Below are positions 1-5,255 of a DNA stretch of 5,255 nt, piece after piece. How positions within the stretch are numbered: position 1 is the first letter of the stretch; the number at the start of each line of letters is the position of its first letter. The stretch comes from Amoeboaphelidium protococcarum X5. Lineage: Eukaryota > Fungi > Aphelidiomycota. Below the pieces are notes generated by a model. That model was not told where the DNA came from and did not search any database. It saw only the letters and a program-made list of their open reading frames with translations. The stretch is taken from positions 1-5,255 of the forward strand of contig JALDTO010000255.1 in NCBI GenBank assembly GCA_023515725.1, in the 5' to 3' direction. Both the position numbers and the translations under genes were made by a program.

Positions 1-74
1 AACTACTTCTTCAAGTGAAGTAGAAATAACAATAATTGGTTATTATTTATTTTCTACTTATTACGTTTTTAACA
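1..74 (+). repeat. LTR, 3' part (R/U5 side), probable end ...TTAACA at 74; reconstructed LTR about 120 bp
   Basis: TAACA (70-74) is the inverted complement of TGTTA (5180-5184), giving typical TG...CA termini. An alternative end at CA 102-103 cannot be excluded. Confidence 0.6.
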
Positions 75-85
75 TTTCTACTTCA
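75..85 (+). promoter_or_regulatory. Putative self-priming primer-binding site TTTCTACTTCA
   Basis: Directly follows the probable LTR end and is the perfect reverse complement of TGAAGTAGAAA (16-26) inside the LTR. No TGG-starting tRNA PBS lies between the LTR and the ATG. Confidence 0.5.
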
Positions 86-122: not shown

Positions 123-1140
123 ATGGACAGCAGCAAGGACGATGCGTATCATGGAACGATATTTTGCGGCCCTAATTTCACTGCCTGGCACAAGTCGTTA
201 CTCACTTAAGCCAGAGAGAAGAAGGTGGACGCGGTGCTGGGTAAGAAGGTGTACAAAGAGATCAAGAAGCTTGGCTCTGTTGAAGACTATTATGCAAATC
301 TCTTGTCTAATCTGGATAGCGCCAGCCAAACTCGCGTCGTCTCCGTCGGAACGGACGCGTCAGCCGTTAATCAGGCAGCTCCCGATAGTAGTGCATAGAG
401 AGGTGACGTTGGAAAGTAAGGTGGAGCTAGAAAGGATGTAGTCCCGTCCTCTGTACAGTCCGTATCTTCAGGTGGATCTTCAAGTCTGGATAAGCATAAG
501 GTGATTTCGGAAGTTTTGGGAATGAACAGCAAAGCTCTGGCAATTATCGAGAATTCCATCGAACCTCAGCTGAGATATATCATCATCAAGTGCAAGTACG
601 CGTATGAAGCAGTATAAGCAGTGGAGGCATATTGGAACGCTAAGTCTCCTAAGCACTCTGGCCTGCTTGCTGAACAATTGGAAAGTCTCACCTTCCAACA
701 GTTCAATCATTCAGTGAAACTTCTATTTGCGATGAGAACGATTGTTGAGGAGATGTAGAAGTGTGGAGATACTTCTATTTCGGAGTAAAAACTAGCCTAG
801 AAGTTCTTAGATAAGCTACCGTAGGGCCCAACGTATGGCGATATCCGCGCGTTGGACAACGTTTCCACTTACTTAAAGAAGCCTCTGACTACCGCGGATC
901 TGATGGACACTCTGACTAGTATTGAGCTATAGCGCCAGATACAAGCCTTACGTTAATCTGGTGGTGAGTCTACTGAATCTGTGTAAGCTAATGCAATGGT
1001 TAAGTAAGGAGCTTCGTTTAAAGGTAATCGCAAGCAGTAATTCTCTACAGGCGGGAGTAGTAGCAAGTACTGCACTAACTGCAAGAAAGCGAACCATACT
1101 GCTGAAGAATGCTACTGGCCTGGTGGAGGTGCTGAGCACA
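123..1140 (+). other. gag: Gag region (capsid plus nucleocapsid); zinc knuckle CTNCKKANHTAEEC at 1071-1112
   Basis: Perfect CX2CX4HX4C followed by YWPGGG. Upstream are copia Gag-like segments NSKALAIIENSI...AYEAV and FLDKLP. The C-terminal boundary is approximate. Confidence 0.85.
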
Positions 1141-4100
1141 AACGTCCTGCTCACTTAATACCTAGAGACAAAGATTAAAGTCATGGCATAAAGAAAGTCA
1201 AGTTCAGTGCTAATGTTGCTCAAAGTGCTGAAGACGCTAACTTTGTGTCTCTAGTGACTCACGTCATGACCCTCAATGCGGCTATTGACTCTACTGCTCT
1301 AGACAACCAGAATGTCTGGTTAAGTGATGGAGGTTGCAACAAATTTGTTACGTGTAGAAAAGACTGGTTGTACAATTACCAAGATTGTTCTGCTGTTTGC
1401 ACCACTATTGATAATAGCACTTTGGTTACCGTGGTAGGTAGAGGCAGCATATAGTTTGAAATGCGTAATGACCAAGGTAAACTAACCATTGCCACTGTTG
1501 AGGACGTCTTGTACTCTCCTAGCTTCTCCTTTAATTTATTCCCTGTTGGGCCGGTTGATGACAAGAAAATGTATGTGGTATTTGGGGAAGGCATGAAGAA
1601 AATCTACCAAAATGGAGAATGTATTGCAACTGGTTAGAAAATGAGTTCTGGACGTTTTGATGGATTGTATGTTATGGACATCAAGGTGATCTGGCCCAAG
1701 TCTCATCAATCCGAAGGCAGTGATCCGAAGCGTCACAAGTCTGATGATCAAAGTAAGAGCGAGGCAGATGTAGTCAGTCTGTCAGCAAGTATCAATGCTA
1801 AGACCATCCACGAACGTCTCGGACATCCTAGCAAGGGAATCGTGAAGAAAATGGTGTGACTAGATATGTTAGGATAAGTTAGCCATGACATCGACTTTGA
1901 TTAAATAGATCACTGTGATCCCTGTCTGCAAGCGAAAGCTACTCGCGCTCATTTTTCTAAACGGAAAGATTCTCGGTGGGACAAGAAAGAGATGCCTCTA
2001 CGGACACCTCGTGTTCTTTATATGCTTCATGCGGATCTCATCGGTCCCATTGGCATTCAAACACCTCAGAAGTAATCCTACATCTTGACTATAGTAGATG
2101 ACTACTCAGGCTATGCATGGGCGGAATTGTTGTACAGCAAAGATTAAGCATCCTCGGCCATTTAAGTGCTTAACGCTAGAATGAACGTGGAAACTGGTGA
2201 GAAGATCAACACTCTAAAATGCGACTAAGGTACTGAGTTTGTGAACTAAGATCTTAAAGGATTCTGTCGTGATTATGGAATCCTTTTAGATATGGTGCCT
2301 AGATATACACCTTAGTTGAACGGAGTAGCTGAAAGATATAATCGTCGGATTGTAGAAGGTGTATGCAGTATGTTACTATCCAGTGGGTTGCCCAGAAGAT
2401 ATTGGGGCCTTGCAGTGCAGGCTTATGTATATGTGGCGAATAGAGTTTTAACAAGTGCTCGTAATGCCGCCGGATAACTGTAAATAACACCGTACGAAGT
2501 ATACCATGGGAGCTAACCGCGCTACAATCATTTGAGAATTTGGGGCTGTCCCGTTACGTACTTCGTACCTAAAGAAGCAAGAGCTGATAAATTCAAATTC
2601 TCTAGTCGTACTGCTAAAGGTCATTTCATTGGGTATAGACCAAGCGGTTATCAGATTCTCACTGCTTAAAATTCATTACTCGATGTTCCTTTTGATGAAG
2701 TCGTCTTTCACGAGGTTGCACGTTAGACTTATGGTGCCTAGGAGTTTGACTTGATGTATGAATCGTTCTATCCTCCAGATCTCTCAGACACATAGTCGGA
2801 ATCTGGTTTGATGTTGGGCGAAAGCAGCACCTCTTGTGACTTGACATAGAATCCAGATTAATCCCGTTCTTCATTCGGCGAAAGCTCTGATAATATGCGC
2901 TCCACTTTGGGCGAAAGACATGTAGATTAGACCAATGTGCATGACAATGATTAACATACGCCAAATCCTCAGATGGAGGTGGGCGGAAGTGATGATGTTG
3001 ATGTTATGCCTACCGGTTTGGTAGATGATGTTTATGTGAACACTTAAAGTGATGTGTCTTAAGTGAATGTGTAAGTATCGGGCTCGAATGTGCCGTAAGA
3101 GAATGTGAATGTGAATGTTCAAGATCTTAATGTGAATGCGAATGATTAAGAGCCTAATGTGAATGTGAATGATTAAGAGCCTAATGTGAATGTGAGGGAT
3201 GATGCAGACGCGACGAATGTGTAAGCTATATAACAGAGATCTGCGTGTCTTAAAGTTGGTGGTAAGCGAATCAGTCGTCGCCTGCGTAATATCAGTGCAG
3301 AGTCTAATCCTTTAGAGCAAAGTGAAGAGCAAGAGGATGAGGAAGACGCTCTGGTGAATAAGAGACTCAAACGCCTGGTTGAAGAACTCAAAATCGACAT
3401 GAACACACGGGCTGATATCAAGGCACTCTCGTCTCAGGTGAAGATAAACGAACTAATTGATGACTTTGTTCAATGCTATCTCTCTAAGCTTGAGGTTGAA
3501 GAGATGCCGTATGATGTGACTTGTCTATTCAATGAAATCTATTGTGGCTCAGACATACCTGTGACTCCTAAGACCGTTGCAGAGGCTATGTTACTTAAAG
3601 AATGGCCGCAGTGGAAGGCTGCGATGGAGGATGAGTTGAGGAGTCTTCTTAAACATGGGACTTGGAAAAGGTCCATTCTGCCATAAGGCTTTAAAGCGCT
3701 CCCTTGCAAATGGGTTTTTAAGATCAAGCTTGATTCCAGTGGGTAGGTGGAGAGATTCAAGGCTCGATTAGTTATTTAAGGATTCCGTCAAGTGAAGGAT
3801 GTTGATTACACCGAGACATTTGCTCCGGTGGCTAAGTTTAACACGATTAGGATGGTAATTGCTATAGCTGCAAAGTATGATATGATAATCCATTAAATGG
3901 ATGTAAATACTGCGTTTTTAAACGGAATACTGAATGAGGAGATTTACATGAAAGGGCCTGTGGGTACCGAATTTGAAGGTCAGATACTGCGTCTACTGAG
4001 AAGTCTTTATGGGCTCAAATAAGCACCGAAATGCTGGAACAATACAATTCATTAGTTTCTTGTCGAGATTGGTTTCAAGAGAAGCCATGCCGACAATTGT

Positions 4101-5153
4101 CTTTACATCAGGCGCAAGCACGGTAGATTATTTATGATAGTGCTCTATGTCGATGATATTCTTTTAATTACTTAGCGCTAATCAGATATTGATGCCGTCA
4201 TAGCACAGCTGGCTCAGCGTTTTGACATGAAAGATTTAGGTCCTGCTGAGCATATTGTTGGGATTCGGATCAAGAGGTCAATGCCTTAGAAGATTATCTA
4301 ATTAGATCAACGCACTTACCTGGAACGTGTTCTTACTCGCTTTGAAGCGGACAACTGTGTTGGAGTCTCAACACCCATGAGTCTTTAGGCGATTAACGTT
4401 GATGTTGATGATGGTTTCTTGGATGTTTCTTATAGAGCGTTGATTGGTTCATTGATGTATCTTATGGTGGGTACGCGTCCCGACATTGCATTCGTTGTTG
4501 GTTACTTAAGTAAATATCTGTCGAATCCTAAGATGGAACACTACAGTATGGTCAGAAGGGTCCTGCGATACTTGGCTGGTAGTAAAGATCTTGTTTTGAT
4601 TTTCGATGGGAAGAAAGATCTGCTTCCCATTGCTTATGCCGATGCAGACTTTGCTAACGATTAAGAGGGAAGGCGGTCTACCACCGGCTATGTAATTCAA
4701 ATGTGTGGCGCTAGTATCTCTTGGAAGTCCAAGTTGTAAAGTGCAGTTGCGTTAAGTAGCACTGAAGCAGAGTACTATGCCGCTGCTGCTGTGTGTTAAG
4801 AGCTGTGCTGGTTTAGGGAGATTCTGAATGAAGTAGGGCTCGATATTGTGGTTGATGGGCTAAGGTTGTTAGCTGATGAAGAAACTGTTGATAGAGTGAA
4901 GGTTCATCCACTTAAAGTTATGGAAGACAACCAGAGTTGTATTGCCATTACAAAGAATCCGGAGAAGTTTAGCAGAACTAAGCATATCGAAGTTAAGTAT
5001 CATTTTGTCAGGGAGTTAACTGAAAGCGGCCGCGTTATGTTTGAATATGTGAATACGTAGGAGCAGACTGCTGATGTTCTAACCAAGCCGCTGACTCCTA
5101 CGCTATTCCGAAGACATGTTGCCAGATTGGGTCTAGATTAAAGTCGCTGTTGA
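123..5153 (+). CDS. gag-pol: Gag-Pol polyprotein, 1676 codons plus stop when TAA/TAG are read as Gln; one internal TGA at 1857-1859
   Basis: ATG at 123 (MDSSKDDAYHGTIFCGPNFTAW..., copia Gag N-terminal FxGxNF/YxxW pattern). Track ORFs 1245, 1641, 3354, 4419 and 4848 all lie in this frame. No frameshift was found. It ends ...ADVLTKPL...RHVARLGLDQSRC-TGA. Confidence 0.9.
1317..1560 (+). other. Aspartic protease domain (divergent active site)
   Basis: WLSDGGCNKFVT aligns to copia WxxDSGAxxHMT. It is followed by VVGRGSI and DVLYSPSFSFNLFPV (consensus G.G.V ... DVLYVP.L..NL.SV). Boundaries are approximate. Confidence 0.8.
1809..2715 (+). other. Integrase (HHCC zinc finger, DD35E core, C-terminal SH3-like region)
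   Basis: HERLGH (1809-1826) and CDPC (1914-1925). LHADLIGP (D2034), CDQGTEF (D2223) and YTPQLNGVAERYNR (E2331, exactly 35 residues between it and D2223). Then LPRRYWG, TPYE, HLRIWGC and FIGY. Confidence 0.92.
3102..3195 (+). repeat. In-frame 27-bp tandem repeat, about 3.5 copies, encoding NVNVNDQEP in the IN-RT linker
   Basis: Units at 3102, 3129 and 3156, with a partial unit at 3183. Consensus AATGTGAATGTGAATGATTAAGAGCCT, built from an AATGTG hexamer. Confidence 0.92.
3567..4600 (+). other. Reverse transcriptase (RVT_2, copia type) and connection region
   Basis: PKTVAEAM..WKAAMEDELRSL..GTW, CKWVFKIK, RFKARLVIQGFRQ, DYTETFAPV, HQMDVNTAFLNG, SLYGLKQAPKCW, LYVDDIL (YVDD 4146-4157), FDMKDLG, YRALIGSLMYL..TRPDI. 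Confidence 0.96.
4629..5135 (+). other. RNase H (Ty1/copia type)
   Basis: YADADFA, RRSTTGY, ISWKSKLQ, VALSSTEAEY, EDNQS, RTKHIEVKYHFVRE, QTADVLTKPL. The catalytic acidic residues are present. Confidence 0.94.
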
Positions 5154-5170
5154 GTTGCACGTATATCCTC

Positions 5171-5179
5171 AGGCGAAAG
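5171..5179 (+). promoter_or_regulatory. Polypurine tract (plus-strand primer), AGGCGAAAG
   Basis: 8 of 9 purines, abutting the TG start of the LTR. Confidence 0.75.
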
Positions 5180-5255
5180 TGTTAGGTTGTGACGAAACAC
5201 GTACAACGTCAGTGAAAAATGATCAAACTACTTCTTCAAGTGAAGTAGAAATAAC
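5180..5255 (+). repeat. LTR, 5' part (U3 side), begins TGTTAG directly after the PPT
   Basis: TG dinucleotide immediately after purine-rich AGGCGAAAG, 26 nt after the pol stop. The last 30 nt equal nt 1-30. Confidence 0.8.
5226..5255 (+). repeat. Exact 30-nt terminal direct repeat of nt 1-30
   Basis: AACTACTTCTTCAAGTGAAGTAGAAATAAC occurs at both ends of the window. Confidence 0.99.

Follow-up and report, generated by a model that had tools for sequence, protein, structure and literature searches.

The window analysed here comprises the 5,255 bases of contig JALDTO010000255.1 from Amoeboaphelidium protococcarum X5 (assembly GCA_023515725.1), which it matches letter for letter (contig C253 in our numbering). 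It holds one internal region of a Ty1/copia long terminal repeat (LTR) retrotransposon plus parts of both LTRs, within which the edges of the window fall. Comparison of three placed copies with their flanks (contigs C314, C207 and C164) gives an element of 5,345 bp in full, bounded by direct LTRs of 120 bp that begin with TG and end with CA (TGTTAGG...TTTAACA). Each of the three loci has its own perfect 5-bp target duplication (ATTCG, TTACA and TATTA). The placed copies and the collapsed contig of the window show only 2 differing bases in total, at 2875 (C164) and 5205 (C314), and in two copies the 5' LTR equals the 3' LTR, whereas in the third a single base separates them. These insertions are very recent and independent. 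The same 30 bases occur at both ends of the window (1-30 and 5226-5255). A circular molecule was considered for this contig and rejected; the overlap is an assembly artefact of the collapsed LTR repeat.

From the ATG at 123 to the TGA at 5151-5153 a single frame is kept over the whole coding sequence and no frameshift occurs. Over the whole window this frame contains 5 TGA triplets, as against 18-82 in each of the other five frames. As sense codons it uses 40 TAA and 19 TAG (59 TAR) next to 19 CAA and 19 CAG (38 CAR), exactly the totals counted by hand in a preliminary description of this DNA. The domains (Table 1) follow the copia order of gag, protease, integrase, reverse transcriptase (RT) and RNase H, with the integrase ahead of the RT. 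They were located by searching Pfam models against the genome with stops read through; positions were taken from the window's own copy, so that its coordinates apply. All three models that the preliminary description had proposed as a check, RVT_2, rve and Retrotran_gag_2, gave matches, and gag_pre-integrs did so as well. The RVT_2 match spans profile positions 3-242 of 244 (cut-off 31.6 bits). Even the stop-free pieces alone match RVT_2 (three pieces separately), gag_pre-integrs and Pol_BBD.

The catalytic motifs are in place, as had been described: the zinc knuckle at 1071, LSDGG at 1320, the two halves of the integrase finger (H-x4-H at 1809-1826 and C-x2-C at 1914-1925), the integrase D, D and E residues within LHADL, TIVDDYS and NGVAER, and YVDD, TEAEY and ADVLTK further on. 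The C-x-W-x-GGG motif following the knuckle had been taken as a sign of fungal copia elements, an association that finds no support in the single fungal element compared, from which the motif is absent. The preliminary description also called the element intact. This holds as far as the single frame, the lack of frameshifts and the motifs are concerned, but a second in-frame TGA at 1857-1859 had been overlooked. The region 123-5153 is not one open frame even when TAR is read as glutamine, and the element is intact only if this TGA is bypassed.

Table 1. Features of the A. protococcarum copia element in window coordinates.
Feature	Position	Strand	Details
5' LTR, 3' part	1..74	+	full LTR begins 46 nt before window base 1
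LTR segment TGAAGTAGAAAT, candidate self-primer	16..27	+	exact complement of 74-85; inverted repeat I2
Primer-binding-site slot ATTTCTACTTCA, from the last LTR base on	74..85	+	complementary to 16-27
Gag-protease-integrase-RT-RNase H frame	123..5153	+	59 TAR as Gln, one internal TGA (1857), terminal TGA 5151
Gag core, Pfam Retrotran_gag_2	504..824	+	31.7 bits (cut-off 27); 3 TAG and 2 TAA inside
Gag zinc knuckle C-x2-C-x4-H-x4-C, then YWPGGG	1071..1112	+	motif reading
Protease, Pfam Pol_BBD; active-site region LSDGG 1320-1334	1317..1451	+	stop-free piece 1179-1451: E 1.1e-5, 26 bits, just below the 27-bit cut-off
Integrase N-terminal HHCC zinc finger, Pfam gag_pre-integrs	1773..1937	+	38.4 bits (cut-off 28.4); 1 TGA and 2 TAA inside
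In-frame TGA followed by CTAG (UGA-CUAG)	1857..1863	+	candidate programmed leaky stop between Gag-protease and integrase-RT-RNase H
Integrase catalytic core, Pfam rve	2016..2312	+	52.6 bits (cut-off 32.6); 5 TAA inside
27-nt (9-codon) tandem repeats in the variable integrase-RT linker	3102..3200	+	repeat family D1
Reverse transcriptase, Pfam RVT_2; YVDD 4146-4157	3660..4379	+	233.3 bits, E 3e-68; 4 TAG and 6 TAA inside
Connection and RNase H region: TRPDI, TEAEY 4761, ADVLTK 5070	4389..5087	+	aligned to 65 standard-code copia RT-RNase H proteins, 33-45% identity
Polypurine-tract-like AGGCGAAAG	5171..5179	+	directly 5' of the 3' LTR; read from the sequence, putative function
3' LTR, 5' part	5180..5255	+	runs on 44 nt past the window end

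The meaning of the TAR codons can be read from relatives that use the standard code. A stop-free RNase H piece of 91 residues by itself retrieved only 16 short fragments, among them one from Penicillium that led to a copia locus (L112), and the uninterrupted RT-RNase H translation of that locus retrieved thousands of relatives. From these, 65 non-redundant standard-code copia RT-RNase H proteins were aligned with the window translation, in which X was written at each stop codon. Five TAR positions had been singled out beforehand as conserved glutamine sites. Three of them are near-invariant glutamine in the relatives: TAA 3894 stands opposite Q in 58/64, TAA 4020 in 64/64 and TAA 4737 in 63/63. 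The other two are less telling, since position 3777 is mostly K or R (Q in 5/63) and position 2313 is Q or E (four each of nine). When all TAR sites are pooled, Q is the commonest aligned residue (22%, a 4.8-fold enrichment) and K, E and N come next, a pattern that resembles the one at the window's own CAR codons. In the eight alignment columns with at least 60% Q among the relatives, the window has TAA at three and CAA or CAG at three. A further TAA lies at 5139-5141, four codons ahead of the terminal TGA.

The host genome of 23.6 Mb uses the same code. Its housekeeping genes do not end at TAA or TAG, the outcome that had been named as speaking against a reassigned code; they end at TGA and carry TAG and TAA internally. 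Cytosolic HSP70 ends in EEVD, BiP in HDEL and alpha-tubulin in GEEF, each directly followed by TGA, and the tubulins have canonical acidic tails before their TGA. Full-length HSP70 matches contain 5-18 in-frame TAG or TAA codons each, and tubulin matches carry some as well. The sole TAA of alpha-tubulin is opposite Gln in 116/116 tubulins from animals and other organisms (up to 94% identity), and 10/25 of the HSP70 TAR codons are opposite Gln of Escherichia coli DnaK against a background of 5.8%. The search for glutamine tRNAs with UUA or CUA anticodons suggested in the preliminary description was also positive: two tRNA genes with a CUA anticodon (L064/L065) and two with UUA (L073/L074) were found among the 63 tRNA genes typed out of about 1,171 candidates in the genome. 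In the acceptor and T arms these genes closely resemble tRNA-Gln(UUG) and are unlike the tRNAs for Glu, Lys, Trp and His. In the host nuclear code UAA and UAG are glutamine and UGA is a stop. With the glutamine columns, the host genes and the host tRNAs in agreement, the central claim of the preliminary description, that the element is written with TAA and TAG as glutamine, is borne out. Its guess of an aphelid host fits too, both in the code and in the genome size, the published A. protococcarum assembly being 24.7 Mb with 40.5% GC (PMC10608142). For this species UAR = Gln is given in a passage of PMC5304391 that cites Karpov et al. 2013. The choice among glutamine codons differs between element and host: TAA exceeds TAG in the element, while TAR codons in the HSP70 genes are nearly all TAG and most of their glutamine codons are CAG.

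A variant with about 1% divergence, found in run X7 (the sample of another strain under the same organism label), makes it possible to ask how the frame is maintained. There are 39 listed coding differences from the window, of which 28 are synonymous under the UAR = Gln code (p = 1e-8) and 28 fall at third positions. Downstream of TGA 1857 the ratio is 19 synonymous to 9 non-synonymous, i.e. 19/28 (p = 1e-5), and only 2/9 of the non-synonymous differences in that part lie within catalytic domains. Most non-synonymous strain differences are located in the integrase-RT linker (2832-3334). In the variant, CCATAG is also inserted in frame and a GAG is changed to TAG; unless TAG is a sense codon, neither could be harmless. 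Sister copies with CAR at the TAR sites and scattered C-to-T changes, which had been named as evidence to the contrary, were not seen: the copies are near-identical, and the variant departs from them mostly at synonymous third positions. The element is under purifying selection, has transposed very recently and is active.

TGA 1857 is the sole internal TGA, and the same frame continues beyond it to 5151. It is located past the protease, ten codons after the second His of H-x4-H and ahead of C-x2-C, in the codon context GTG TGA CTA GAT. TGA CTAG is kept in all copies and in the X7 variant, where the contig covering 45-3133 has 24 differences, none of them at this site. The purifying selection downstream of the TGA implies that pol must be translated. 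Readthrough is known for the contexts UGA-C, UGA-CU and UGA-CUAG (PMC10085805), and TGA 1857 is most likely a context-driven programmed leaky stop. In such a mechanism ribosomes would mostly stop at UGA 1857, giving mainly Gag-protease, and a minority would pass UGA-CUAG to produce the full polyprotein. The leakage would then set the ratio of structural to enzymatic proteins that retroelements require. It is highly probable that the locus as a whole is explained by the combination of a recoded element, purifying selection, recent transposition, a leaky UGA at 1857 and, with less confidence, self-priming (see below).

The other copia elements of the genome support the reading of TGA 1857 as a leaky stop. 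Eight copia families were examined, by translation of loci from a genome search with gag_pre-integrs: A, to which the window belongs, and B (L092-L096), C (L097), D (L100), E (L104-L106), F (L101-L103), G (L098) and H (L099). About 1.9-3.2 kb was viewed per family, and within that stretch 8/8 families have one such in-frame TGA, downstream of the gag knuckle and either ahead of the integrase finger or inside it; families C and G are represented by decayed copies with additional TGAs. Its place varies: families D, E, F and G have it after the gag zinc knuckle and ahead of the protease, families A, B and C within the integrase finger (one column apart), and family H about 30 codons upstream of the finger. 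C comes right after the TGA in 7/8 families; of 64 long host frames free of TGA, only 6 have C after their terminal TGA (Fisher p = 9e-6), and the eight housekeeping genes checked have TGA-T or TGA-G as their stop context. GAA or AAA directly precedes the TGA in five families. GAA TGA CT is found in E, G and H, and TGA CTA G in two families, including that of the window. An integrase tree groups family A with D, E and G (support 0.97), apart from B and C, so that on at least two occasions the TGA came to lie inside the integrase finger, whether by new origin or by a shift. The window also has a TAA at 1176-1178 in the gag-protease linker, the region where families D-G have their TGA. Its homology with that TGA was considered and dropped, as the linker is too divergent to be aligned.

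Some observations weigh against a leaky stop at 1857. No stable RNA fold was predicted after the TGA (minimum free energy -18.8 kcal/mol, z = +1.18, equalled by 186/200 shuffles), so that any readthrough signal would rest on the short context only. The interior of a zinc finger is an odd site for a protein boundary. In the copia element Tca2 of Candida albicans, the sequence flanking its UGA did not by itself drive readthrough in Saccharomyces cerevisiae (PMC2194720), and a UGA between gag and pol is thus no proof of simple readthrough. With 63 of the tRNA candidates scored, a UGA-reading tRNA, or a tRNA primer, could lie among the rest.

The last two points also favour the idea that the TGA is bypassed in another way, for example by an internal promoter that gives pol its own transcript, by reinitiation, by splicing, or by a dedicated tRNA that gives UGA a dual meaning. 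A minor internal promoter was indeed found in Tca2 (PMC2194720). On the other hand, the signature shared across the families of this genome is a short context (A-rich sequence, TGA, C) that fits readthrough contexts (PMC10085805) rather than a promoter or splice site. The GT..AG spans seen by eye around the TGA measure 8-29 nt, and just one of them, of 27 nt, keeps the frame. This would be extremely short for an intron, and removal of the TGA by splicing was judged implausible. No UCA anticodon was present among the 63 typed tRNAs, and a dual meaning of UGA is difficult to reconcile with host genes that stop with TGA at canonical C-termini. Bypass by one of these other routes therefore appears rather unlikely.

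The TGA could also be an ordinary disabling nonsense mutation, in which case the copies would make Gag-protease only and depend on an intact relative for mobilisation in trans. Non-autonomous elements are frequent among LTR retrotransposons, and because all copies are near-identical one mutated master could be their source. However, the TGA is retained in the diverged variant of the other strain, pol is under purifying selection downstream of it, and no TGA-free copy of the window's family was found in the genome. Moreover, each of the seven other families has a single in-frame TGA of its own, in most of them with C as the next base. A disabling mutation is very improbable on these grounds. 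The chance is negligible that the element is instead a dead copia pseudogene of a standard-code host in which C-to-T mutation such as fungal repeat-induced point mutation (RIP) turned CAA and CAG into TAA and TAG: RIP acts from CpA to TpA and would yield such codons, and the TpA/ApT ratio of 0.87 is near commonly used RIP thresholds, but (CpA+TpG)/(ApC+GpT) is 1.21 and thus shows no depletion, 36 CAT/CAC and 17 TGG codons are still intact, TAY aligns with Tyr (59%) and TGG with Trp (85%) in the relatives, so that His and Trp codons were not hit, and decay is also contradicted by the near-identical copies with intact target duplications, the strong purifying selection on the frame, and the reassigned code of host genes and tRNAs.

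A programmed leaky stop at UGA 1857 can be compared with two described systems. Tca2 (pCal) likewise has gag and pol in one frame with a single UGA between them, and its pol must come from full-length RNA by bypass of that UGA (PMC2194720). In Tca2, however, the UGA lies before the protease and a pseudoknot is predicted after it, whereas in the window it lies after the protease, in the context UGA-CUAG, with no predicted structure; the TGA of families D-G is at the Tca2-like position. The fission-yeast Ty3/gypsy elements Tj1, Tcry1 and Tosmo1-3 conserve GAA-TGA-CT(A/G), the same short context as in families E, G and H, and their stop is needed for transposition (PMC10085805). They differ in belonging to the gypsy/chromovirus superfamily, in having a standard-code host, and in having the stop at the gag/pol border. 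They also have a Tf1-type self-priming geometry, for which the window's family is a candidate. For a leaky UGA, a device already known, the integrase finger is an unusual location.

For the priming of minus-strand synthesis, the region following the 5' LTR was compared with the typed tRNA genes. The slot at 74-85 has no complementarity of at least 10 nt to any of the 63, and a tRNA primer was rejected because the same is true of the whole region 71-100. Matches of 11-12 nt to tRNA loci do occur, but they lie in the flanks of the loci, without extended similarity, and were taken as chance. The slot does pair with the LTR itself: 16-27 and 74-85 form a perfect 12-bp duplex within the minimum-energy fold of the leader, and 0/300 shuffled LTRs pair as well. 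The element may thus prime minus-strand synthesis with its own RNA, the LTR segment 16-27 pairing with 74-85, instead of with a tRNA; we hold this proposal, which comes from base complementarity, with less confidence than the preceding ones. In other runs, related LTR variants differ upstream of about base 12-14 and match downstream of it, as would be expected if U3 met R close to where the 16-27 complement begins. In Tf1 of Schizosaccharomyces pombe, where self-priming is proven, and in the plant copia lineage TAR (Houba, Osr-1), where it is predicted, the primer-binding site also pairs with the element's own LTR RNA, and a tRNA primer site is not universal in the copia superfamily (PMC6317226, PMC10085805). 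The predicted duplex of the window differs from these in its length of 12 bp and in taking in the last LTR base.

Priming is not uniform among the families. In family B the 14 nt that adjoin the LTR can pair with the anticodon region of tRNA-Met(CAT) (L051/L052), and the ATG follows 4 nt after the LTR (L092). Family B, unlike the window's family, appears to use half-tRNA priming, as does Drosophila copia. In family F no self-priming complementarity was found in LTR and leader (101/200 shuffles were as good), and no tRNA signal either. The 3' ends of the LTRs, visible in four families (A, B, E and F), all read TTAACA.

A more general interpretation, towards which we lean only slightly, is that copia elements in this single-stop host use UGA as a switch for the gag/pol ratio at two places and combine it with tRNA-independent self-priming, parts that are known mainly from gypsy elements and retroviruses. 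It includes a shift of the leaky UGA from the gag/protease border into the integrase finger in family A and, independently, in a second clade. If it is true, the abundant product would be a Gag-protease that carries half a zinc finger. The conserved UGA-C sites across the families would represent a natural set of leaky stops in a host with UGA as its only stop, useful for studying the balance between termination and readthrough after stop-codon reassignment.

In comparison with fungal Ty1/copia elements (the Penicillium element at L112; the GalEa and FunCo groups, PMC5445492), the element shares LTRs of the TG..CA type, the 5-bp duplication, the domain order, the HHCC, DD35E, YVDD and ADxxTK motifs and the use of one long frame, with the RT-RNase H identity to the 65 relatives given in Table 1. 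It is unlike them in that 59 of its sense codons are TAR, read by the UAR = Gln code, and in its very short LTRs, the in-frame UGA inside the integrase finger, and the lack of a primer-binding site that fits any of the typed tRNAs. The host code has been known since 2013, and a resident element written in it was to be expected. A barrier to horizontal transfer, which the preliminary description derived from this code, is a conjecture. Transposons of ciliates with UAR = Gln (Tetrahymena, Oxytricha) are also written in the code of their host and look like pseudogenes under the standard code; they belong to another eukaryotic supergroup and mostly to other element classes, while the present host belongs to the fungal side of the tree. 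No paper linking Amoeboaphelidium with retrotransposons was found in the library searched, so the element itself has probably not been described before. The host code, gag-stop-pol layouts and self-priming have all been published for other systems, and no principle is changed. What the element adds is a retrotransposon lineage that has been resident in a recoded host long enough for TAA to outnumber CAA or CAG as a glutamine codon, and that is still active. There is also a practical consequence: under the standard code this element and all other genes of the genome appear as wrecks. Annotation of aphelid genes and repeats needs the UAR = Gln table together with tolerance of one in-frame UGA in LTR elements.

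A metagenome contig from JGI (L108, 13.5 kb) was considered as a copia element of another TAR = Gln host, in view of a stop at the glutamine of LYGLKQ. This was rejected, since the contig holds a copia relative of high GC content (54%) that is decayed and carries frameshifts, for which a dead copy is the better explanation.

The tandem repeats of the integrase-RT linker consist of a unit of nine residues resembling NVNVND-Gln-EP. Their number varies among strains and runs, with a 27-nt insertion and a 27-nt deletion (runs X8, X5), and the frame is always kept. For nearly every nuclear tRNA type there are two loci, almost identical and placed on different contigs, and the HSP70 genes are paired too, which suggests that the host genome is duplicated or hybrid. 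A contig of 28.4 kb (C346) with a tight cluster of Trp, Gln, Asn and Tyr tRNA genes is probably the mitochondrial genome.

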